From positions 1 to 64,000 of the forward strand of contig DF237347.1 in assembly GCA_000708835.1 (NCBI GenBank): a stretch of 64,000 nt of DNA. Reading direction: 5' to 3'. The notes under the pieces were generated by a model. The model ran no database searches, was not told the origin of the DNA, and was given only the letters and a program-made list of their open reading frames with translations. The position numbers were made by a program, and so were the translations under genes. Origin of the DNA: Klebsormidium nitens (Eukaryota > Plantae > Klebsormidiophyceae). Positions 2 through 60,296 of this stretch are shown one piece after another. The first letter of the stretch is position 1, and each line of letters starts with the position of its first letter.

Positions 2-703
2 GCTCTGAATGAATCAGAGAGCAGGCACCTTGAGCTTCGAAGCCAGTGTGCTCAACACATTGCCACACATTGGGACCGCCACTCTACCCAAGCCAACTAT
101 ATATATAGACTGCCTGACGAGCCCCCGAAAAAAGTCACCGGCCAGGAAGGCAAACACCAACACCAGCACCCAAGCAAAAGAAGAAAGACCAACACGCCCC
201 GCCGCTTTGCCTCGGCGGCTGAGTATCTTCACTGGATGCAGACCCCAGACCTGGTATGGGGTTCTGACTTGGAAGCACTCGCGGCTGCCAAACTACGAGA
301 CAGACCTCTCCTCATCTGGACAAACACAACTAGAAAACATGGCGAGCTCTTAAATTTCACCGCTCAATCAGTCAAGCAGGGAGCAATTCACCTCCTTTTC
401 TCAGGCAATCACTATGATGCACTCCGCAGTGACCCGGAATTAAACATCTGGAACTCACCACCACTCTCTTCACTCACCAGCCAAGCCGCCAACAGCAGCC
501 AATTCTACTGTCCCAAGATGAGGGAACTGCACCGGCCACTACTCCTCATGTTGCCCAGGCCATCGAGCCTCCTCCCCAAACCCTCCGGCACCCCAGTCAC
601 CACAATCCTGACTTGCCGCCGCCCCCAGCAGCGGGTAGACCAGATCTGCCTGGGCATACAAACCACAGGTCAAAGAAACGATGCCGTGATCTCCCCGCGG
701 TGA
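2..703 (+). CDS. OTU-like cysteine protease domain, 5'-truncated by the window edge; probably part of a mobile element ORF
   Basis: The frame of track ORF 236..703 stays open back to position 2 in my translation: ALNESESRHLELRSQCAQHIATHW...RRFASAAEYLHWMQTPDLVWGSDLEALAAAKLRDRPLLIWTN...IHLLFSGNHYDALRS. This matches the OTU pattern (H.ELR; Y...M....WG..LE..A; IHL.Y/F..HYD.L). The catalytic Cys motif would lie upstream of the window. No introns; strongly C/A-rich strand. Confidence 0.75.
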   Translation, partial: ALNESESRHLELRSQCAQHIATHWDRHSTQANYIYRLPDEPPKKVTGQEGKHQHQHPSKRRKTNTPRRFASAAEYLHWMQTPDLVWGSDLEALAAAKLRDRPLLIWTNTTRKHGELLNFTAQSVKQGAIHLLFSGNHYDALRSDPELNIWNSPPLSSLTSQAANSSQFYCPKMRELHRPLLLMLPRPSSLLPKPSGTPVTTILTCRRPQQRVDQICLGIQTTGQRNDAVISPR

Positions 704-1334
704 TCCAGCACAGCCATTGCAATGCCAAACCCCAAACTCAACCGAAGAAAGAGGAGGTCACTGCTAACACCACGGCTGACATGTGCACCTGCCACCTGAA
801 GCGGAAGCGAGACAACCTACCACTACTTTTTGAAGACTGTACATGTCAAAGACCAACCAATAAGCTTAAAAGAGCAGCCACCCAACATCCCTTTGATGGA
901 GGAACTAGTTGCAAGCCCAAACGCCCCAGGCGCCCACCAGCGCATTTGATCTCAGACTTCTTTCTCCCCAGCAATGTGGGCTTTGATCCAGGAGGATCTC
1001 AGCCAAGAGCAAGCCTCACCCACCTGATCCGCCCTCCCGCCCCTTTTTCTGTCACCACCCAGCTGTCTGCACAGGACCCAATGCTGCGCCCTGTGCGCTC
1101 TGAGCAAGCAAAGCTCACTAAAGATTACACTGACACTGACAGTGACAGTGCTCTGCCAGTGCCAATGCCAGCTCAGGCAGGAGGAAGCCGAGGCCTCAGC
1201 TGGTCGCATAAACGGCCACGCTCAAGAAATACACTTATACCCCCACGCTTGAGACCGATCTAACTGACCATACACTCTACCGGAAATGAAGCGACAAAAG
1301 CTCTCCAATTCGCGGTTTACGCGTATAGCAGTCC

Positions 1335-1425
1335 CGATGCTCCACCTGATGAGCTCGGTGTGCTCAGAATATACCACAAAAAAAAAAAAAAATTGAGAAA
1401 CCGCGGAACGCGGTTTTGGAGCTCG
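1335..1425 (+). ncRNA. Type I hammerhead-ribozyme-like motif, possibly degenerate
   Basis: CTGATGA core at 1346-1352 and GAAA at 1397-1400. Stem III is CCGCG-gaa-CGCGG (1401-1413), followed by T1414/T1415 (U16.1/H17). Stem I pairs GCTCCA (1339-1344) with TGGAGC (1417-1422), extended by CGA/TCG. Stem II is poorly formed (G10.1 opposite A) and its loop holds an A15 run (1378-1392). Confidence 0.55.
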
Positions 1426-2059
1426 TTTATAGGTATACATAGTGCAATATATGCAATTTAGGGACCCTATATGCGGGTAGAGATTAAAATTATGAATAGC
1501 TACCTGGAAGGTCGTAAACTTACAGGGTTTACCGTTCTGTAGATTCATGGCAAGTCGATTTCAAGGTACCCGGCCGCTTATAGTAGAAGCTATTAATAGA
1601 TTAAAATAATTTGTTAGTGCCCATGCAACTGGGGGGCTGTTTTCCCGCGCCGGGCAGAATTACCCCCTGGCACTTAGCGCCTGCAGAATTCGGGCAGAAT
1701 TCTTGATTGTCGGCGGTCGCTATGGCCGCCCCCCAAGCCGTCGATGGAAAGCAGCTACAAATCTGACGGCGAATCACATTTCCTGCTTTCAATCGGCAGG
1801 TCCCGTCCGATGGCCCCAACCATTCCTGGCCTTCCACTGATCTTAGGTGTATTTTGCGCGCGCGCGTGAAACCCCGACCACAGCCTGAATTATGCGGGCT
1901 GAAATTGCCCCCTAAAGTTAAAAACGTGACCGGGAGTCCATACATGAACGTGCGTTCTTGGCCGCAATATCAGGGACCTACCGATCACTCTTTCTGCATG
2001 GGAAAAGAAATACGGTCTAAAAGTACGGGCCCAGATTGCCCGACATGCACACAGCATAC

Positions 2060-2945: not shown

Positions 2946-5900
2946 ATGATGGCGTCCAAAGAAGAACAAGTCGAGCTGTTGCCTCATTTGAGCAGACAAG
3001 ATGATGAAGCGGAGCCACCGGGCAGCTGGAACACCAGCCATGAAAAAGCTCCAGCGAACCGTATTGATCCTTCACTGGTCGGAAGCGAACCTGAAGATGG
3101 GGAGCTGGAGGAAAGGACTATATGGCTGGTGGCACGCCATATGTACTGCAGCCACTTTTTGTCAAGATGGGGCGACAGGTAAGCGCTCTCCCTGTTTGGG
3201 ATGGTGACATCGAAGTCGTTTGCTGTCCTCAGCATTTAATAGCATCATATCACCCGGCTTCTACCTAAGCTCATCTCACATCAAGAGTGTACAATGCAGT
3301 AACGGACTCAACGGCTGCGCTCATTTCTTCCTTCACTTGATAGGCCTTAGACATGTCGTCTGCATCATGCTATCTTCCCTGCCACTTCGATTATGTGCTT
3401 GACTGTTTCTCTGTCCTGGCAATAATCAATTCTGGAAAGCATCTTTCCTAAAACTTCTGACGTTCAAATACACTCAGTAAAGTGCATCCTGCTCAAGTGT
3501 CCTATCCTCCATGCAGGATGTGGGAGTTTGCGGTTGCCCTCTTCATGATCAGAATATGGAAGGACTCCCTAATCCTGACGGCCCTGTATGGCCTCGTGGA
3601 AGCAAGCTCCGTGGCTGTCTTTGGGGTCTTTGTTGGCAAGTGGGTTGACCGCAATCCACGCATGAAGGTACTTACATCACTTGGATTCATGAAAGCCTCA
3701 TTCCGCCCTGCTTTTCTCCTTTAATCACAACTTATCTGCGGCTTTTTCATAAAGTTGTGAGTTTGTGACATGGGAACTGTGACTTGGAGAATCAGTTCAT
3801 GTGTTTTCGGCAGATCTGCAGTGCATGAGAGTATTTGATTGAGCGAATCTTCCCGCCATATGGAGATCATTGGGCCGAGGAAGTAACTGACGACTGATGA
3901 CGACATACTAGAGTCTGGTGGGTTCTGGGAGACTTTATACACAACACCTTTCCCTTGCAGGTGGTGCGGCTCTCTATTGCTATCCAGAACGCATCCATGA
4001 TAGGTGCAGCAGTTGGCGTCATCTTGCTCTTGCTGGAATCTGCACCGCAGGGCCCTGCTTTTATCTCTCTAGTGTTCCTGGTCAATCTTCTGGGAGGGGT
4101 GCAGGCCCTTGCAGGGCTCGCAAACAACATCGCAGTCGAGCGGGACTGGTAAGTGATACAGCTTTTCTCAATCTGCTAACCCCACTCATTCAGCTCGGGT
4201 GCCATTTTGTGACTCAGTTCATCTTCTGCTGAACGTTGACGCCTACTGTGGCCAATTCTATGTTCAGACAGAGAACTTGATGTGTACTCTGCTCAAGGAC
4301 TTGTCTAAATCCTGAGTCGTCCTGAGTCGCAGAGGTTTGCGTTGAAGTGCCACTCATTGCTTGCTGCACAAAGTCATCAGCCACAACCTGACGCTTGCAT
4401 CTTCTGAACAAGCTTCTAATATACTTGAGACTAGCCTTTGGATAGTGCCGCGGCAATCTGCCCTGCATAGAAGAAAGGAAGCGTTTCAGAGAAATCAAGC
4501 CGAGGAACATGCATGAGAGATAGCCAATGTATGTTAATCTCTAAGCAATCCTGTCCCGGCTCCTCTCAGGGTAGTGGTGGTGAGCAGCCAAGCGGTCCCT
4601 TCCATGCGGGGCACCGTCCTCTCCTCTCTCAACTCGACTATGCGCCGCATCGATCTCAGCTGCAAGTTGCTGGCTCCCGTCGCGGCCGGTCTCCTCATGA
4701 GCCTCAAGTCCACCATCTCGGCAGCCGTGTTCATCGCCGTTTGGAATGCTCTCTCAACGTTTGGAGAGTACTACTTCTTGCACATTGTCTACCAAAAGGT
4801 GCCGGCACTGTCAGAGAAAGCGGTCCTGAGTTCCGAGCGAACTTCTTCTGCCCTAGAGCCCGATTCTGAAGCAGGGGATCTCGAAGAGGAAGCGCCGGAT
4901 AGTGAAGCGGGTCTTTCGAGACTGAGGGGGGAGTCACGGGCACGGTGGTTAGAGGTGGTTAGAAGCGGACTAAGTGACATATTGACGCCGCTGCGGAGCT
5001 TTGCGAGCGGATGGCGCCTGTACGCAAAGCAGGAGACAGCGCTGGCAGGGGTCGCGCTGGCGCTGCTCTACTTCACCGTTCTTAGGTGAGGAGACACCCA
5101 AGATACGGTCAGAAACCACTGCTTGCCTTTATATGGTGTACAAGCTTTCTTACTTTACAGGCGTGGATTGTGTTCGCAGAGATTGTGACTGCTTCTTTGA
5201 GGCCCCCGAATCTACCCGTCAGAGTTTTCTTCTTGCAAGTCGAGACACCATCCTTAAGGGGTATGTGAAATTTTAAAGCTGTTCTGCTCACGCCTTATCG
5301 TGCTGAACTGATTGAAGAATCTATTATATCAGCTGTTTTCCGGACAACAAGCAAAGTTAGCGTTGAAGCTCTCAACCTGGGGCCACTCAGCCGGGGTGCT
5401 CGACTTTTCGTCACTTAGCGTCAGATAGCCGACGATACTGTACCTAGCAATACAGGAAGCACGGGCTCTTCCGACCCACTCCAGACACCGACGCACAAAC
5501 ATCGTCAATACTCCTGAAAGAGAATGGCAGACGTACTGTTTGAAGGCCCCTCTCTTCGTAATGTTCCAATGTCCCCAAGATTGGAAACCGGTTCGTCCTT
5601 CTCTCATCTCTCCACCTTTCGTCGCCTCCCAATCCTGTGAATTTACTCGTCGTAACGTCAGCTTTCTGTCATACCTATATCAGTTTTCCGTGCCCCGCAG
5701 CTTCGGCTCCATGATGACGGCGGTGCTGAGCTGGCGCGGCATCTCTCCCTTCACGCTGGGCCTTGCTCGCGCCGTGGCGGCCCTGGTTGGGATAGTAGCA
5801 ACAGTGTGCTACCCAGTGTGGCATCGGCGGGTACAGGGCCTCCGGACCGGGCTGCGCGCTATCTGGTTGCAGGTGGGTTCGACGGCTTTTGCGTCCTTCG

Positions 5901-18405: not shown

Positions 18406-18903
18406 CTGGTACTACCTAGTGTCTAGGTACTTGTGATGCAATGTTTAGCTAATCAGGGTGGTGATGTTTCCAAAAGATCATCTAACGGTTCTCAATCTTC
18501 CACGGATTTGTACTGCCATCTGGACGCCACCTAGGCTTTCTTTCACCAAAACCGTCCGATTGGATGCAGACACGAGTGGAGCCAACAAACTTTTGTTCCC
18601 CCGACTGCCGCTGTACATCACCCCTAATTGTGCATGCATGCAGCGAGACAGGCACCCCTAAAAACTCGTGGAACCCTAAATCTAGACAATGCCCTGCTGC
18701 AGCCTCAGGCACCTTGCAAAATTTCAAGGACAAGGTTTCGCCCAAAAAATCTGCGACTCAGTGCGAGGCGTTGCTGCATTTTTCCGTTCTCCTTGGCTGC
18801 CAGGCGGCAGCTGAAACAGAAAGGTTTCTCTTCAATGTGCACAGTCAAAGATCGACATTCTTCCGCGCCACTCCTCTATTGAAACAGTCCAAGTGACAAC
18901 AAT

Positions 18904-21900
18904 ATGGAGGCAGCATTGCGTGCCATACGATCTGAAACTTTTGCATTTCAATCTGCATTGTCGCACACCCTTCCTTACTCAAAGAGAACAGCAGCTGGCT
19001 TCTGCATAGAGCTCCCTAAACCTTCCTTTGGTGGTCCTTTCGCAAAGAGAACCTTATCAAGCGAAGGGAGGAAAAGCAAGGGTACGAGGAGTTTCACACT
19101 CAAGCAGGGTGGTGCAGTGGCGACCATGCAATCAGGTACATCTTTGGCATCATTTCATTGGTTGCAAGACGTCAGAGCCCTGGTGCAAGAAATCTCTGCA
19201 AAATTCTTTCAAATATTGCATTTTGGAGATGGAAGATACGTCGCAACACGTTACGAGCACGACCGGTATTCTAGGATAAGCCTTGATGAAGCTGCTTGAT
19301 GGCTGCTCAAGAGATTGCCCCATTAATTGTATCATTCACATATCCGCCTGATTGACCTGGATGCGGCATCCATTTTAAACAAATCTTTGCAGACAATTGG
19401 TTTCAACCACTTTGTCTTCATTGGTGTCATGACCTTTTGTACCAACTGATGTTTTTGCTGCAGAAAGGTCTTTGCCAGATCTTAGCCTTCGGCAGCCAGA
19501 GGTCGAAAAAGCGATCCAGGCTGCTTTGAGCAACTGCTTAGATAAGACGTGGCTCGAGAAGGAGATTCCCGTCCTGCAATCAAAGAAGGAAGGGAAGGTA
19601 ACCACCCACTCTTTTCCAGAAAGGCATACAGTGGACCAATTGAGGCTTGGGGCCTTATTGATCATTTGCAGGACTCAAGCCCCGGACACATCAATCTTTC
19701 AGGAAACAGATTTAGATTGTAGTGATGGATGTCTTCGACTGGATCGACTGGGATCGGTTTTATCAACTCATTGATAACTAATGCGTTCACGAAGTCCGAC
19801 GCACTTACTGGTGGTTAGGCTACTGTCAAGGTGCAATGGTTGGCCTTGTCGGAGTCACGTAATTCATTATTGAACTGTTGGTCTCAACTGTAGGTGCGAG
19901 ACACTTATGACGCAGGCGACAGGCTGGTGATTGTGACCACCGATCGTCAGAGCGCTTTTGACAGGATTTTAGCCGCAGTCCCGTTCAAAGGTCAGGTATG
20001 CTGCAGTCTCCTTGTGATAGCCTACCTGTCACCAATCCTAAGAGCAACAATCTGTTTGCTAGCGTCGGCATCAAAAAACGGAAACTGACTATCCATGTCC
20101 CGTGTTGCCGCAGTCTCTTGTGGCCTCCAAGAAATGCAAATCTGTATTGCACATAAGCTTCATTGCCTTCATTGAACAGTACGAGACCTGAAATAGGAGA
20201 ACTTTCTGGTGCAACTGAACACTCTAACTCGTTTTTGCAACAGGTTCTGAACCAGACCAGCGTGTGGTGGTTCGAGCAGACCCGGGATCTCGTCCCAAAC
20301 GCCTTCCTCTCGTCTCCAGACCCAAACGTCACCGTCTTTCAGAAGTGCAAAGTCTTCCCAGTGGAGTTTGTAGGTAATTGGCACAGAATTTCCTTCGTCT
20401 ATTGTACTGGAAGTTGACAGAGCAAGGCCCTGGTCCAATTAGCACAGATTTGAAAAGTAGGATCCGGTGATTCCCGATCAATTTGGAGATGGTTTAGAAC
20501 CTGATTGCCCACAGACTCGACCTCGTTCTTTCTTTCACGAGGCACTCGCTTGCCACCTCTCCAAGCGAGGTGGAGAGGTGGAGAGGTGCAAGATTTGTCT
20601 GTCAGACGAGCCAAACAGGGGGCAAGGTATTAGTCAGATGCAGGTCTCTTGATAAGTCGTCTTACCTTCTGCAGTACGCGGCTTCATCACGGGTACCACG
20701 AGCACGTCCTTGTGGACCGTCTACAACAAGGGCATCAGGAACTACTGCGGGAATGAGCTGGACGAAGGTGAGCATGCTCGATTAAAACGAAGCTGATTAC
20801 GATTCGGATGAAAGCAAAGAGCGGCTCTTCTGTTTCGTCCTGGGGACCAACAAACAAAATCGCTTCTCGAAGTGCGGAGGTTCGAGTGTAATGGTTTTCG
20901 AGCGGTGCTTTTCTCTTAATTCGAGGTCGATCCTGATCTTAGTCAAGTACAAAGGCCGCTTGCACATTTAGTAGATTCACCAGTCTCGCAGGTCTTTCAT
21001 ACCGCCCTGCTGTTGGAAACCGCATAATATCCTCTTTCGAGACTCACGTCTAGCCGTTTGGTCGAGATTCAGAGATAGATTCCAGCAGTCGCAACTGAGA
21101 AGCCCTCTGCACCATGCTTGGCATGGTTCAATTCGAAAACGCTCCCCGGTCTGTCCGTGCAGGAATGGTGAAGAATCAACGGTTGCCTGAGAACATCCTC
21201 ACTCCCACGACCAAGGCCGAAGACCACGACGCCCCCGTTTCACCCCAGGAGGTGAGATGAACTTTGGCCACCATCACTGTTCGTAAGACCGGATTGCTTG
21301 ATTTTGAGTTCAGTATCTCCTCGCAGTCTCCTCGCACGGAAATCTCGTAGATTGTATCCAAGGTAAGATTGTCTTGTTCGAGTCGGATTCATGTGGTCGT
21401 GCGTCCACATATGTTGAACTCCTTATCCCAGCTCTGCTGCAAGTACCAGAACCTTTTACCTTCTCAGATTGACCCTCAATGACGCTATTATCTCTTTTGC
21501 CAGTCATGAAGCTGTCTTTATCTGCTCATCAGCATTTTAGGCCCCCTCATTCCGTGGGAAAGGATATGCTCTCGTCTCGTCCTCAAACCCGTTCCTGAAC
21601 TCCGACGTTCTTCTTCTCAATAGATCGTGGAGCAAGGCCTAATGTCGAAGGAGGATTACGGATTCGTGGCGGAGAGGGCATTGGCGCTGTTTGCTTACGG
21701 CCAGGTGAGCACCTCAGCTCCCTGCAGGGTTGTTCAGCAGTGCAAGAACTTGCGTGAACGGTAGCAGTATTCCGTGTTTCTCCGAATTCCCTGGAAATGG
21801 GAGCAAGATTGGGAAGATGTTTCGGTGAGGTCGCACACTGAGTCGAATCCGCTCTGAGGCTGACGTGGCCTGTCAGGAACAGATCGAGCGTGCTCGAGTC

Positions 21901-42533: not shown

Positions 42534-45500
42534 ATGATGAGCCAAATGCAAGATCAGAGGTCATCCAATGGGCCACGGAAGAGGCAGTTTGACGGACCTG
42601 ACAGAGGCCAGGCAAAGCGGCCAGCAGGAGTTCCAGAGACCCTCTTCAGGCTTCTTGTTCCAGGCAAGCGGGTAGGGAGCTTGATTGGGAAAGGAGGTTC
42701 AATCATCAAGCAGATGAGGGAGGAAACAGGGGCACGAATCACCGTAGCAGATGCCCCTCCGGTGAGTTGAGGAGCACACTGGTTTGAGATTGGATGCAGG
42801 TGGAGGACTTGCTTTTTGGAAACCTGGCAACTCTTGAGAATGATAGGATGGGAGTCCGCTTTGATGTATCTGAATTTCACGGCTTGTTCCTTGCCAGACC
42901 CAATTATCATCATTTGTCAAGTTCGATGCTCTCTGATCCTTGCTGCATGTTCCTTGCAGTCTTCAGAAGAGCGGATGGTCATCATCCAGGCACAGGAGGT
43001 CGTTCAAAATGTGCAATTTGGACCCGCGCAGCTGGCGCTCTTCAGGGTGCACAACCGGTTACTAGAAGTAAGTTGGTTGGATTGCCAAGCTACAACCTTG
43101 ATGGAATACTCACAGTGTAATATATCTGCGTGCCTTCAAAGTACTGAGCTTTTTTGCTCACCAGACGCAGCGGCTGACGGTCGATGCAGACTGTTGAGCA
43201 GTTACTCTTGGGATTGTGTACGGGTTTACTTGCACCGCCTGCTCATGCTCCCCTAGATTGAAATTGGTTTCTGCAATCAAAGGTGGTTGCATGTCGCCTA
43301 CATGAGGAGGCTTCCTTGTCATCATGATGTCTCGTCTCTGGTTTGCAGGCCATAGCACAAGAAGCAGAAAAGACTGGGGCCGTTCCTGATGGTGGCAGGG
43401 TCACGACGCGCCTTCTCATCGCGGACACGCAGGCAGGGTCGGTGATCGGCAGGAAGGGGGACATCATCAAGCAGATCCGGGAGAACTCAAAGGCCTTCAT
43501 CAAAGTCCTGACGCAGGAAGAGAACCCGTCCACAGCAACGCAGGAGGATAGGGTGGTGCAGGTGAGAGTCTGGGGCAGGCGATGTTTTTTGTCTATTAGA
43601 AGACCTTGTTAGCCTTGATTCATCCATAACATTATGATTGGTTGGCAAAGGTCGCACCTTGCATTTTACGGTTTGAATAAAACTGAACGCCACCTGCCGT
43701 GTTAGTTGCAGCATGATGGCCAGAGCATGTTCTGGTCCTCTTTTGAAACAATTTTGGATTGAGCTCCTAACCTCTAGCGCTGCTGCCTGTTGCCTCACGC
43801 TTGAGTTGGGAGCGGCATTGACTGGACGACCTGCAGGAACGGGGCGTTGCATTCAAACCACCAGCTTGCAGTTTGTCCAACTACTGCAGTTGATGCTTTG
43901 ACTTACGCTGTTGCAGTTGCTTCCTTTTGCACCACTTGCATGCTGAAGCATCTCTCTAACATTGACCAGATTGTTGGCGAACCTGCACAAGTCCAACTTG
44001 CCCTTGAAATTGTCTCAAAGCAGCTAAGGTGAGCAGGGTGCTCATCGCTTTACAATTTATCCAAAAAACTTGACTTCCAGAAGAGTTGGAGTGGAGTATG
44101 TTCCTTCAGGTTCTGCTTTTAATGTTTGTGCTTTTGGGCTTGTTGTGCTCTCTCATAAGAGCTGTCACGTTTGCATTATCTCCTACAGTTCTGATGGACC
44201 TACAGACTTCAAGTAGCTGTGCTGAATTTGCCTTCTGGCTTGCACTGGATTATCACCAAGATAGGTTTCTGCTGTTTTTCTGGTCTGCTCTTTGCATGAA
44301 GCAGAGGATACAATGTCTGGTATTGTGCCCCATGATGTCACCCAAATTGGTCCTAGCCTTTCTTCCAAGAAGAGAGACTGCGGACAAACTCAACCGCTGA
44401 TTTTTATCTGAGGGCATAATCCAGAGAGGTTTTGGACAGTGATTGACAAGTTATTGTTTGCGTTGCTGTATATTCTGGTGTTTGTACCTTTCCAGCCTAC
44501 GCTTATTTCTTTCTTGTTTCTTCAAATGTGGTTTGATGTATGCTCGTGCCTGTGCGCTTTCACATTCGCTACCTGCAAGATGCCATGACATTTTCCTTCT
44601 AATGCATCATCATTTCAGGCCCCTGGCTTCTTTTCAGTTTCACGTTCTCTGTCGACACAGAACTCATCAGTGCCTTCAGGGTCCTCCTTACTTACTGGCG
44701 GTCTTGACTTTAGAGCGCAGTCTTTTCACCAACAAAACTCTCGCTTGCATAAGTTATGAAGTCGCTTCTTTTGACTCTTATTTCTGTTTGTTTTGGGCTT
44801 AATTGCACCATACCAAAATTTGTGCAGAGAGAACCCTCCAAAGGGTCAGGGCGCAGCAGAACACCGTCTCCCAAGCGGCCCCCAGCAGCAAGTCTTCGCT
44901 CCCCCGCAGCCCTTCATACCCTCCTCGACTCCCCTCAGCTTCGGCACCGCTTACCAGATCGAACCCAGCACTGGGGCCCTCGTTCCTGTGCCCATCTCGC
45001 GAGGGCCTGCTTCTGCGCCCCCCCCCTTGCGCTTCGAAGAGCATCGGGGGGACAGAATGTTCGCTCAAGAGCAGTTCAACCGCTCCCAGGGGGAGCCAAA
45101 CAACCTGGGCGCAGTCTACGGTGCACGGGGGGACGCTCTGCTACCAAGGCGAGACGTTGGCCCCAGTGGTTTGGTTAACGGGGGGAGCTTCCCATTGGAC
45201 GAAGGAATCATCAACCGGACAGTGGACTACAGCCGAATAGCAATGAGCCGGCCTCAGGGCGAGTTCGATCAGCACGGAGGGCAGCAACCGAGGGGCCAAG
45301 ACGCTGCTTTTGAGCGGAGAGCCACTCCTCCTTGGGCTAGGGGTACAAACCCGGACCAAGCAGGGGGGCATGGTCAGGGGGGCCTTGGTATTGGGGTTTT
45401 GGGCGCAGGGGGGGAACTTCCCGGAGGTCCAAGTAGCGGGGTCCTGGGTACGGGAGGGTTCGGCGGAGGGTCTGGTGCGGGTCCCAGCATTGGGTCGACT

Positions 45501-54302: not shown

Positions 54303-57300
54303 ATGGCGTCTCACGGAAATATGGCAGGGGACGCCTTTGGCTCGTTCAAGCCCACCACGGCCCCTGCCGTTGTGAACGAAATTCTGGACTGGGCCAAAAA
54401 GGTGATGGTCGTCCAATTGCTCAAGGAGAACGAACGCGTCTGCGACCTCTATTGTGGGAGGGGGGGCGACATCCGCATCTTTGCAAGCGGCAAAGTGGGG
54501 GGGTACTTGGGCATTGATTCGTCCGCCTCAGCTGTAGAAGCGGCGCGGGAGAATTGGCTTAAGCATGGGAAGCCGTTCGAGGCCGACTTTCACGAGGTTG
54601 ATCCTTGCTTATCGAAACTGATTGGGCGGCTGGGGTTAGCGAGCGGGGATTTTGATGTGGTCAGCTGTCAGGGCCATCTGCAGGACTCTTTCCTGACGGA
54701 GATCACAATGCGGAGCTTCTTGACAAACGTGGCTGCGCTTCTGAGGCCCGGGGGGTACTTCTTTGGAACGTGTCCGGACTCCAGCACAATCTGGTGAGCT
54801 TTCCTGGTGCCTTGGAAGAAAGCACAAGTCCCTCTTACAGTAGTAGTAGTGATTTGACAGAGCTCGGTGCACCGTCTTTCTTCAGCACTTGTTGGGAAAA
54901 ACGGCGGTGCAATCAAGTTATAGACGTGAATGCTGTGAGAGAAGTTTGTTGCGCCCCTGAGCAGTATCATGATCTGAGCTGGCTCAGCGATACTATTCTG
55001 ATGATATTGTGTTCGCTAGCTTCTAAATGGATGACAAAGGGGTGGTTATGCTCTGCGATGGCTGAACGATCAGAACAAGATTTGTTTAAGATGGTTCAGC
55101 GTGCTGCCAGTGTCAGTGGGCCCTCTTGTCCTTATCCTTCTTTCTAGAAAGGTTTTCCGTCCACAAAAAGTTCCCACTAACAGTTATGACTGTTCCTTCA
55201 CAGCCCACTGTTTCTTTCAAAGTCTCTTGTTTAAAAGCCTGCCACCTCTTGAAAGAAGTGGTGCTGGGGAGGGAGGAGCAGGGGGTATTTGAGAGGGAGC
55301 CCTTTAAAAAACGCCCTTCCTCAAGAGCCAATTCAGTCGCTTCTTTTTTAAGACTGCCCCAGTGCCTGAGGGGCTCTGACCATAGTCCTCAAATCAGTCA
55401 CAATGATGTAACGGCATCTCTCCAGGGATCTGATCAGTTCTACTGCTGCAAGGCATGCCCCGATACATTGCCTGCAGAAGAATGAGGTATAACTTTTTGT
55501 TGCAGGGTGAAGGCCCAGAAGGCGTTACAGCAAGCGCTGCAGCACGGGCAGACGGGGCCCATCCCCAAGGTGGCCTCAAAATCGTTCCAGATCACCTTTG
55601 AGAACGACAAGTGAGTACGCAGGGGGACCTGGGGCCTGCAGATTTGCCTCGAAGAGTGGATACATGCTAGTGGTGCTTGCTTTCTGAATTCTGCTCGCAT
55701 TTGTCTGAAAGGTGTGTTGAGATCCGCAGCGAGTGCCTAAGAAGGTTGTCGTTTCTCGTTTTGCTCCGACGATCCGTCCGCACTGCACTGCGAGGAATTT
55801 GTTCTGCGGAAATGCGACCTGCGATACTGAATGCCCATTGTGTTCTACGAGTGAATCAGGAGGATTCGTCAATCCAAGCGAAGCTTTTCATCAAAGTAAT
55901 TGTCGCCGCTTGCAGGTTCTCCACCTTTGGTTGTGAGTACTTCTTCTCGCTGATCGATGGCATGCCCCCTCAGAAGCAGCTATTGGTCCATTTCCCTTCG
56001 CTTATAAGGTTAGCCACCTGACATCCTCTTGGAAGAAAAAGATGGGCACGTTTTATGTCATCTCCGTCGTCCACTCCCAGTCGTTGGAAAGTTCTTATTC
56101 TGTAAGTGATAACACATACAGACTTCTCGCTTTATCAACTCGTGATAGAAACAGAGAAACAGAAATGATAGAAGCTTGGAACAATCTCGGAGGACAGGAA
56201 AATCCAATGAACACCAAAATCTACATATTGTTTGAACTTTACGAACCCCTCAGCCATCTCTGACAGAGGAAAAAGATTCTCAAGAGGAAACTCATCTGAG
56301 GCTATGCGCTTCCCAAGCCCACCTCGTACTGGCCCCGTGCTCCAGGTTTGCCGCTGAGGTGGGGCTGGATATGGTCGAGATCAGCAATCTGGAGGACTTC
56401 TACGAGTACAACAAGTGAGGCATCGCATTCACTTTTCAGACCTTGGATGCTTTTACAGTTCACCTTGAAGCCCCACGTTCATTTCTCTTCCCTTGATACT
56501 AGACCTAACGTCCCTATATCGTCCTCCCTTCAAGTTTACTCTCTTGTGTCCATTCCCTGCGTAAGCTCTTCACCCCGTCATTCATAGCTACGCAAAAGCG
56601 CTACTTACTCGAGATAGTCAGTCGGAGCTTTGATCTTCATTTTTCCATCGGTTTCGATCAACATCGCGGTCATTGTCTTTACAAACTTGTCACCGAGCAT
56701 ATAGCAGTTGCTGCTCTTGCATTTCCATCTTTGTGAAAGTCACGTGTGCGTCGTCGACAAGAGACCCTGCTCCCTCTCTCCAGTTGGAGCGCAGAATTTG
56801 GAAACGGCTGGGGGACGTGTCGCCCCGGTCTATCTTTTGACGTTGAAGGTTAGGCGCTCCAGCTCCGTCAATGTTGAAAGGTTACGACCTATTTGGCGCA
56901 AGCCCTCGGCGCATCCCTGCTCTGAAGTTTGGGCTGCCGATGGCCAGATCATGCACATTGAAAATTGACACATTTTCGTCATCTTGTAGTTTTTGCAATC
57001 GGCCTTTTGAGCTCATCGCCACTGCGTTTCGCAGGGCCCCTTTTGGCGACTTGCTCCACCTGCCCACGTCCACCGACGGCAAGAAGCGCATTCCCGGCTA
57101 CGCCAAAGAGCTCATGTCCATCCACGCCACGTTCGTCTTCCGCAAGTCCGAGCGCGCGCTCCCCGCGCCCCTCCCGCACATGAGCCCGCTCCCGACGGTG
57201 CTGACGTCAGCACCGGACACCGGACTTTCGGACGTTTCGGACGGGGAGGCTGCGCCGGGAGCTGCGGACGATGCGTTTGCCGTGGATGGGGGGTCGCCCA

Positions 57301-60296
57301 TGCTGCACATTTCCAGCCCCCCGAAAATTGTTGCCGCCCCCACGGAAGAGGAGGCTGCCCCAGGGGATCCCCCTGCGAAGGCTGAGGTGAAGAGGCGGCG
57401 GCTGCGGAAAGTGCAGAAAGAAGCGGAGGTTCCGGTACCGGGGGGTGTGGAAAAGCCCGTTGTACAGAAGACGCCGGCGGAAGCGGTGGGAATTGCTGCT
57501 GGGAAGACGCGGCTTGGGCGGCTGAGAAAGGCGGGCGAGGGACCCCGGGGCGCAGGGGCAGAGGAAGGGGTAACTAGAGCGGCAGAGGAACTCAAGGCGG
57601 GAGCTGCGAGTGCAGCGACGAAGAGGATTGAGAAGGTGGCCAGGGTCAAAGCAACTGGCGATGCCGAAAAGGTGGGGACGGGCCAGGCAGCGGGAGTGTC
57701 GAAAGACGCAGCGAAACCGGACGACGCTGCCAGGGGCGCAGTGCCCAAGGGCGCAGTGCAACCCCTGAAAAAGGGCGTGCTGAAGAAGGTGGGGAAAAAG
57801 GGCGGTATTGCGGTGTTTGTAGCACGGGGGGCCGGAGAGAAGACGAGCGATTCCCCTCGGATGCGTGCAGAGGGGATGGCGATACTTGCGCTGGCTGCAT
57901 TTGCACCCGGGGCCGACGTGCCAAAAGTCGAAAAGAAACGGGGGGTGAAGGCTGACCCGGGCAACGCGGGGTCCGTTCCGGTTCCGGTGAAGGATGAGCG
58001 CGGAGCAAGCGAGGGCGTTAGAACGGTTGCCGCAGCGCCCGGAAAGAAGGGCGGGAGGCTGCGGAAAAGGCAGGGCGGAATTGTTGAAGCGGCGACGGCG
58101 ACGGCGAGCGAAGAGGAAGTGGTTGCGAAGGTGGAGGTACCGGAACCGGAACCCGAAGCGGCTCCTCCGGAGCTACCCGCAGAGGAACCGAAGCCAGCGG
58201 CAGAGGAAACAAACATCTCCGTCGAGAAAGCAGGCAGTACGGCGAGAGGGGTGAAGAAGGGGGCTGCGAAGGCTGGGGGTTTGCCAGGGAGGCCACCCCC
58301 CCGCCGGTCGTCGCGCTTCGAGAAGTTCGACTTTGGGGCGGCATTCCAGGGATCCCCGACGGAGTTCTCGTTACCCGAGGAGTGGCTTTCAGAGGCGGGG
58401 GGCAGGAAGAACCGGAGGATGAGCATCCGGGTGCCGTCCTCGGAAGAGGGAGCGCCGGACCAAGTGCTCGAGGCGCAGATTGACGAGGTGGGGGTAAGAA
58501 GGGCACGCGCGGCGAGCATTGAGCGCGAGATCGAGGCCGCGCAAATAGAGGCGGTTGCGGAGGGGAAGAGCGAGTTTGTGCGGGGAGAGGGAGGTGAGGC
58601 AGGCTGGGCAGCGGAGAAAGGAAAAGGGGGCCAAGAGAGGGGAGATGGGTTGGTAGCGAAAACAGAAGCCCGGGGAGGAGCTGTCCAAGAAGGCGGAAGA
58701 GAGGGAGACAAAGGTGCTACAGCTGCGGAGGCGGGTGCGGTGCTGCGGGCTCCCGGGAAAGGGGGGAAGAAAGGGAAGGGAAAGAAACAGAAGCGCGGGG
58801 GTGGTGAGGTGGAGAGTACCGCGGCGCTTGCCCGAGAAGCAGGCCCTGGAGTCGAAGCGTCGGCTGGAGTGGCGGGTGACGCGTCGGCGGGGCTTACGGA
58901 CGACCCGGCCGCGCAGCCGCCGTCCGCTGGTGACGCCTTGGCAGGAGAGGAGAGTCAGGGCAGATTGGATCCGCTGACGGAAGCAGGAGAAGCGGAAGGC
59001 GTGGGACGAGACACGCGGAGCCAAGCGCCCGCGCCCGACTCGCTCCAACTAGGGTGGGCTTATGACGAGGCGCAACCCTTCGTCGGAGCCGTGTACACAA
59101 GAGCGGGAAAGAGGAAGGGCGGGAAAGCGCAGGGGGGGGGGAGCGGCGCGGCGAAGGAAGGGGAGAAGACCGCAGTAACGGGTGACGGGGAGCCAAGCCC
59201 GAGCGTTACGCCGGGTAAGAAGCGGCCTGGCAAGGGGGGCAGAAAGAGCGGGGCGGTGGAAGAGGCCGCGAGCGAGCGAGGCGGGGCGGGAGTAGCAGAC
59301 GGTGGGGATTCACGGACACCAACTAGTGTGGCGACTTCGGCGCTGGAGTCGAGTCCGAGGCTCGTGCGGCGCGTTAGCACGCGGAGGGGGGGCGAGCAGA
59401 GCCAGTTTCTGGAGTTGAACATGGACTTGCCGAGTCCGGAGTACAAAAGAAAGAAGGGCGGAAAAGGCGAAGGCGGGGGAGGGAAGAAGAACGAGGGTGG
59501 GGAGGAAAAGCAGGGCGGGGGGCTTGAGGAGGGCGGTAGTCAGGGGACGGAGCCGGGAGCAACGGGTGGGGCGCGAGAGCATTCAGTGGTTGGCGAACTT
59601 CCAGGCACAGAAGCGGCATTTAATCAAGAGGGAGATGGGGATGGTCACACGAAGGAGGAAACGGATGAGGCTGGGGATAGGCCAGCTTCCGACAAGCCTC
59701 ACGGGTTGAGTACCGCAGGTACTCAGGGTCAGGGGGGTCAATATACGGAAGAGAATACGGAAGAACGGCCATCAGGCGAGGGCAGCGATTTGGCGCAGTC
59801 CGCGGCTAAAGAAGCTCAAGGTGTGGAGCCGAGAGGAACGGGAGACGCATCAGACGATTCAAGGCAACAAGAAGCGACCGTGGCACCAGTAGCGGAGGCA
59901 AGAGTTGGGTTAGAGGAACCCGGGGTTTCTGCAAAGCTGGAGGTAGGCAAAGTAGAGCCAAAGAGCGGCAATGAAAAATCAGAAAGGGAGCACCCAGAAG
60001 CGACTGGCGGGCTGGGACGGTCTGGGTTGAGTGTCGATTGCCAGTCCGAGGCAGCGGTTGGAGAAGGCGATCAGCAGACGGGCAGCAGACCTCCGGAAGC
60101 GGGGCCGGCAGGAGAGGCGGGCGAGGACGGGCCGCCTGGGAACAGTGCTCACCAGAAAACGGAGAGGGATGACGTAATGGAGCAGCTGGAAAGCCGCGTT
60201 CAGGACGTCACGGCCAATGAAGCGGAACGGATGGAGGGCGGAGGAGAGTTACCGAGGAAAGAGTCCGGTCAGAAGAGTCGACAGGAAAGGGGCTGA
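54303..60296 (+). CDS. mRNA cap guanine-N7 methyltransferase 2-like protein with a very long low-complexity C-terminal extension (~1340 codons), 5 exons
   Basis: Exons 54303-54793, 55506-55610, 55916-56008, 56346-56414, 57035-60296 (4020 nt, in frame). Motifs VCDLYCGRGGD (SAM-binding), LLRPGGYFFGTCPDSSTIW, LVHFPSLIR, ATFVFRK. The remainder is G/A/E/K-rich. Confidence 0.85.

Follow-up and report, generated by a model that had tools for sequence, protein, structure and literature searches.

A hammerhead look-alike in Klebsormidium nitens probably lies within the structured 3' end of a decayed OTU-carrying LINE

Among non-LTR retrotransposons, reverse transcriptases (RTs) of the 'stringent' type recognise structured 3' untranslated regions (3' UTRs), as exemplified by the 3' UTR of R2 and by the stem-loops of eel UnaL2 and zebrafish ZfL2. 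Hammerhead ribozymes have been described from Penelope-like elements and from retrozymes (PMC4209133, PMC7229834). In addition, the 3' UTRs of Naiad and Chlamys elements contain matches termed 'HHR_core' and 'HHR_half_core', which do not rank as canonical hammerhead motifs (PMC8557442).

The locus considered here lies close to the start of a 64,000-nt stretch of Klebsormidium nitens DNA (assembly GCA_000708835.1, contig DF237347.1, positions 1 to 64,000 of the forward strand), which is referred to as the window. Within it, the initial annotation had read positions 1335-1425 as a type I hammerhead-like fold. The following elements can be assigned to this fold:

1335-1425, plus strand: claimed type I hammerhead-like fold; its elements are present, its ribozyme identity is unsupported
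1346-1352, plus strand: core box CUGAUGA (C3 to A9), read directly in the window
1397-1400, plus strand: GAAA, of which GAA at 1397-1399 (G12-A13-A14) stands directly 5' of stem III
1400-1405 with 1409-1414, plus strand: claimed stem III, CCGCG/CGCGG and a closing A-U pair around the loop GAA
U1415, plus strand: putative H17, directly after claimed stem III in the window
1335-1337 and 1339-1344 with 1417-1425, plus strand: claimed stem I, 9 bp

As the annotation had described, CUGAUGA, GAAA and U follow one another in the order of a hammerhead, stem III is a perfect 5-bp hairpin, to which a closing pair of the A15.1-U16.1 type and a U at position 17 can be added, and stem I comprises 9 bp with U1338 bulged and C1345 and U1416 mismatched. 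The run of 15 A at 1378-1392 and the small hairpin GGUGUG/UAUACC (1357-1362/1370-1375) were likewise recovered, the latter forming only with G-U wobbles. Taken as a whole, the 91-nt stretch folds at -27 kcal/mol (z = -3.9) and is more stable than shuffled sequences. The G10.1-C11.1 pair is indeed lacking, since G1353 lies opposite A1396, and stem II is missing from the window: with GAAA fixed at 1397-1400, C1354-G1395 constitutes the sole possible stem II pair. The proposal that the sequence might instead fold as a dimer offers no rescue and was dismissed, because the missing piece is stem II rather than stem III.

Covariance models of Rfam 15, applied at the gathering score to the whole 64 kb window, returned no match. 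At E<=10, positions 1200-1560 of the window gave no hammerhead match but only noise, and no hammerhead match was obtained in the homologous regions of two related elements, L002 and L005, so that the check by Rfam hammerhead models suggested along with the annotation went against it in all three sequences. Moreover, a loose descriptor was applied that left out stem II and demanded the two core boxes, a hairpin closed by an A-U pair, H17 and a stem I of at least 6 bp. The window contains one match to it, and 200 dinucleotide-preserving shuffles of the 64 kb contain two in total. This corresponds to a chance rate of about 0.01 per 64 kb window, and many chance matches are therefore to be expected across a genome of some 1,900 such windows. 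A second succession of CUGAUGA and GAAA at 44632-44670 on the minus strand offers a good hairpin where stem II would lie, but has two extra bases before GAAA; with neither stem I nor stem III and no Rfam hit, it was rejected as a hammerhead and taken for a chance match. In summary, the stretch 1335-1425 is not supported as a hammerhead ribozyme and is not filed as one because it lacks both the defining stem II and a model score. Judging from its sequence, self-cleavage of the window copy would not be expected.

The nature of the host element follows from the coding sequences upstream of the fold and from their relatives:

2-703, plus strand: C-terminal half of an OTU-like cysteine-protease domain (domain about 2-480), from the frame-2 translation and its homologues
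613-1263, plus strand: low-complexity tail ORF following the OTU part, frame 1, with its stop codon at 1261-1263

The window begins inside the OTU-like domain, and the frame of the tail can be reached from the OTU frame only via a frameshift. Hence, at least one frameshift separates the two and the window copy is decayed. The original placement of the fold directly downstream of an OTU-encoding ORF holds in that an OTU-like part does lie upstream, but the different frame 613-1263 intervenes, and the last stop codon is found 72 nt upstream of 1335. The OTU domain PF02338 is carried by the homologues P0001, P0005, P0006 and P0010, and the window's own OTU fragment scored below threshold in Pfam. 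In the relatives P0003, P0005 and P0006, a single ORF comprises the OTU domain and a tail of 180-240 aa; a protein search with the window's post-OTU tail (613-1260) retrieved no homologues.

Five related contigs (L001, L009, L012, L015 and L017) encode, in the same direction, the Pfam domains RVT_1, RNase_H, zf-RVT and OTU in this order. When solved structures are compared, the L009 RT comes nearest to R2 retrotransposon proteins rather than to L1, and an endonuclease domain upstream of the RT was not found in L009 and L001 by Pfam or by a PDB sequence search. As far as can be judged from sequence, the host is a non-LTR (LINE) retrotransposon and not a Penelope-like element or a retrozyme, an assignment that was made on the RT part of the relatives, the window itself being devoid of this part. 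The Penelope-like or retrozyme host suggested at the outset is thus contradicted by the domain content of the relatives and by an RT close to that of R2. Of the view that positions 1-1425 form the end of a self-cleaving retroelement, the retroelement 3' end is retained, reaching to about 1428, while the hammerhead is not. A second copy of the region is absent from the 64-kb window. On the contig of the relative L006, an ORF of the Peptidase_C48 (Ulp1) type at 18655-19044 on the minus strand is situated about 7 kb from the OTU-LINE remnant; it may represent another transposon-borne cysteine protease in the neighbourhood of this remnant.

Six further lineages, represented by metagenome and read-archive contigs, possess a homologous 3' UTR behind their OTU ORF, and seven lineages were compared, namely the window, L005, L012, L017/L018, L010/L011, L002 and L006/L007. 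Two of the homologous regions are delimited as follows:

L005, 11118-11241: homologous 3' UTR, about 80% identical to the window and its closest relative
L012, 4564-4626: homologous 3' UTR, where the homology breaks off

The 3' regions of the OTU-LINE relatives L003/L004, L009, L014 and L015 contain no recognisable module of this kind. A pattern of 21 bases derived from the conserved block yielded one chance match to a candidate-phyla-radiation bacterium each in metagenome and genome contigs (L008, L019) and none in viral contigs. Furthermore, the covariance model R1, which encompasses the two 5'-most helical parts described below, recovered from 179 kb only the seven known lineages and two matches at noise level. 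A role of the tandem UGA-UGA as the end of the ORF was rejected, since in every lineage the ORFs terminate before the module is reached.

The comparison of these lineages bears directly on the claimed ribozyme. CUGAUGA is exact in five of the seven; L006 has UUUAUGA and L010 CUGAGAA at this place. GAAA is replaced by AUAU in L005, and L002 keeps a GAA core. In both L005 and L002, the base after the downstream hairpin is a G where a cleavable H17 would be expected, and the register of stem I leaves no free position 17. Stem II is absent in all lineages compared. Considering the aligned sequences, the core boxes and H17 of the hammerhead appear not to be conserved among the homologous 3' UTRs. 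In alignment A1, pairing of the hammerhead stems amounts to 69%, which 51 of 500 shuffles attain as well, and the helices of stem I alone reach 53% and 69%; the covariation that was to be sought among homologues thus leaves the hammerhead structure no better than shuffled sequences.

A different fold emerges from the 5' part of the same alignments:

1311-1323, plus strand: hairpin H1, CGCG at 1311-1314 with CGCG at 1320-1323 around a 5-nt loop
1327-1364, plus strand: domain 1, a long irregular hairpin with covariation across seven lineages
1327-1330/1361-1364, 1334-1337/1355-1358 and 1339-1342/1351-1354, plus strand: helices of domain 1
1343-1350, plus strand: apical loop of domain 1, CACCUGAU, which displays CUGAU

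The module starts about 45 nt past the stop codon at 1261-1263. H1 is paired in 100% of cells in the seven lineages, yet it is nearly invariant. Together, H1 and domain 1 account for 16 scored pairs in alignment A3 with 92.9% of cells paired, and 8 of the 16 pairs have changed on both sides, all of them within domain 1. Neither the observed covariation score nor the percentage of paired cells is reached by any of 500 shuffles, and pairing drops to 17-43% in partner-sliding controls. Compensation is exemplified by CCGA/UCGG in the branch of the window versus AGCAG/CUGCU in the branch of L002. RNAalifold predicts the same helices of H1 and domain 1 unaided, and those of domain 1 are part of the single-sequence minimum free energy (MFE) folds of L005, L002 and L017. 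In domain 1, the claimed 5' strand of stem I pairs with the claimed 5' strand of stem II, and most of the CUGAUGA box is contained in the same hairpin. Since it thereby occupies both 5' strands and places CUGAU in a loop, domain 1 is incompatible with a hammerhead junction.

In the window copy, the MFE of 1305-1432 amounts to -35.9 kcal/mol and is attained via a third pairing of 1350-1356 with 1419-1425, while enforcing the hammerhead stems or domain 1 on this segment gives -33.4 and -32.0 kcal/mol, respectively. The three folds are close in energy and thermodynamics alone is not decisive; for the window copy on its own, the conserved fold gains no preference from the energies. The helix 1350-1356/1419-1425 shows an apparent swap from C-G to U-A in L005 but was rejected as the conserved fold, as it cannot form together with domain 1, whose covariation extends over seven lineages. 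Being local, domain 1 would be expected to form first in the course of transcription.

The remainder of the module consists of an A-rich stretch and a second structured part, followed by the probable end of the element:

1378-1392, plus strand: run of 15 A, an expanded A-rich linker (alignments A1 and A3)
1394-1425, plus strand: 3' domain, UGAG at 1394-1397 with CUCG at 1422-1425 around the hairpin 1398-1405/1409-1416
1426-1430, plus strand: probable 3' boundary of the retroelement; BLAST similarity to L005 ends near 1428

When folded in isolation, the 3' domain adopts the same MFE architecture in the window, in L005 and in L002, consisting of a (U/C)GAG/CUCG helix and a hairpin, the CUCG belonging to a conserved AGCUCG block and the hairpin arms differing by lineage (CCGCG/CGCGG versus CGGC/GCCG); this comparison covers only three sequences with an ambiguous alignment, from the three lineages in which the module past the A-run can be recognised. 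From the shared (U/C)GAG/CUCG helix it follows that the claimed 3' strand of stem I has another conserved partner, too.

The A-run differs in length between copies, with about 4-10 A at the same place in the relatives. It could accordingly be taken for a true poly(A) tail, in which case 1393-1425 would be flanking or unrelated DNA and the look-alike would straddle the boundary of the element. In favour of this reading, the run has a different length in every copy, the similarity of L017, L010 and, largely, L006 to their nearest relatives stops within it, and the window has diverged from L005 to a much greater extent past the run than ahead of it. It is nonetheless considered unlikely, because the module past the A-run is common to L005 and L002, which belong to different sub-lineages and differ there about as much as elsewhere, and because the window retains the architecture of this module, including the spacing between hairpin and AGCTCG block. 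Given that L005 and L002 share the module beyond the run, the latter is an expanded internal linker rather than their poly(A) tail, and copies that end within it could derive from internal priming on the A-tract.

As to the boundary itself, similarity between L005 and L002 is lost immediately past their shared AGCTCGGTTTTGC. MAFFT instead aligns CGCGGTTTTGG of the window with the terminal CTCGGTTTTGC of the relatives, which would place the boundary near 1420 and turn part of stem I into flanking DNA. A boundary at about 1428, as obtained by aligning hairpin to hairpin and AGCTCG to AGCTCG, is tentatively preferred because it keeps the shared fold. Convincing target-site duplications were not found in L002, L005, L006, L012 and L017. 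On the minus strand of L005, at about position 3956 of the reverse complement, AGCTCGGTTT joins telomere-like repeats of the TTTAGGG and CCCTAA types. It resembles the terminal AGCTCGGTTTTGC block of the LINE, which may be a coincidence.

Further along the window, at a distance of about 630 nt past the end of the LINE, an inverted repeat pair at 2060-2112/2338-2390 comprises arms of 53 nt that are 94% complementary and 225 nt apart, and a second pair (2146-2159/2275-2288) is nested inside; the segment 2060-2390 looks like a small foldback or MITE-type element. Towards the other end of the window, an ORF of 1141 aa on the plus strand (56871-60296) overlaps the segment from 58 to 60 kb, which exhibits an unusually high GC content (0.64) and a strong GC and AT skew.

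The structural and comparative evidence leaves little room for a genuine, if unusual, type I hammerhead that would trim read-through LINE transcripts with stem II either absent or supplied in trans or by a dimer. Such a ribozyme would agree with the core boxes, the A15.1-U16.1 pair, U17 and the 9-bp stem I in their right order, with an enforced fold only 2.5 kcal/mol above the MFE, and with the retention of CUGAUGA in most lineages. It is nevertheless highly improbable in view of the missing covariance-model score at E<=10, the lack of stem II throughout, the loss of GAAA in L005, the G at position 17 in L005 and L002, and a stem I that is without covariation support and has both of its strands engaged in other conserved helices. 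In addition, if the end of a LINE formed a type I hammerhead, cleavage would remove the 3' strand of stem I before reverse transcription sets in at the 3' end of the RNA, and this segment would consequently be lost from daughter copies. The terminal segment is nevertheless inherited by both L005 and L002, which would argue against a ribozyme.

Somewhat less improbable, though still hardly to be expected, is a descent from an ancestral hammerhead, now an inactive relic, which the LINE subsequently exapted as its 3' UTR. The five features in correct order in the window, most of which recur in L002 at a divergence of about 35% between the two lineages, would be compatible with such an origin. On the other side, a stem II or an entire core is lacking in each of the lineages, the helices that covary are at odds with the hammerhead junction, and a descriptor as loose as the one fitting the window arises by chance about once per 100 windows. 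Moreover, the known occurrences of hammerheads are in Penelope-like elements and in retrozymes, not at LINE 3' ends (PMC4209133, PMC7229834).

Positions from about 1305 to 1428 are therefore best explained, and with good probability, as the structured 3' UTR at the terminus of a decayed LINE with a C-terminal OTU domain in its polyprotein. It would be composed of four parts, i.e. the hairpin 1311-1323, the long hairpin 1327-1364, the A-rich linker and the 3' domain. The RT of the element may recognise this module on its own RNA, and recognition would position the 3' end of the RNA for target-primed reverse transcription, as in 'stringent' LINEs. By analogy with the latter, the chances that the module serves as an RT recognition and priming element appear roughly even, with RNA 3'-end formation or stability as a fallback role. 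The resemblance to a hammerhead most likely arose by chance within a genuine, conserved folded RNA, in which the loop motif, the GAAA of the linker, the 3' hairpin and the partly palindromic GAGCUC would happen to fall in hammerhead order. That the module switches between the covarying fold and a hammerhead-like junction, with some copies cleaving after U1415, is a very faint prospect; if true, it would represent a minimal, stem-II-less hammerhead variant and the first to be tied to a LINE 3' end.

With the structured 3' UTR as the preferred reading, a false positive is removed, as a hammerhead in a LINE of a streptophyte alga would have been notable. What takes its place is a module of about 120 nt with a covarying fold at the 3' terminus of the RNA of an OTU-carrying LINE lineage. 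Covariation of this module agrees with a LINE in which RNA structure, and not only a poly(A) tail, serves to recognise the element's own RNA, and by analogy the module constitutes a concrete candidate for RT binding. Beyond this locus, the case illustrates a general trap, in that hammerhead descriptors which dispense with stem II also catch real structured RNAs of other kinds.

Compared with the systems described so far, the locus resembles type I hammerheads (Rfam Hammerhead_1) by CUGAUGA, GAAA, an A-U-closed hairpin, a U and an open stem I in this order, and the hammerheads of Penelope-like elements and retrozymes by its location in the 3' region of a retroelement. Unlike type I hammerheads, the fold of the window is devoid of stem II, of a model score and of a conserved core, and both strands of its stem I are engaged in other conserved helices. 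In contrast to the Penelope-like and retrozyme hosts, the element is a LINE with RNase H and OTU domains and shows neither a pseudo-LTR nor a tandem arrangement. With Naiad and Chlamys it shares core strings in a retroelement 3' UTR that leave stem descriptors unsatisfied, whereas these are Penelope-like elements and the alternative fold found here is backed by covariation. A further resemblance is to the 3' structures of R2, UnaL2 and ZfL2, which likewise occupy the extreme 3' end of a LINE, display compensatory changes across diverged subfamilies and conserve loop and junction sequences. The present module differs from them by the lack of sequence similarity, by an internal A-rich linker of variable length and by its OTU-carrying host. 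Taken together, it adds another example to an established kind of element, the structured LINE 3' UTR.
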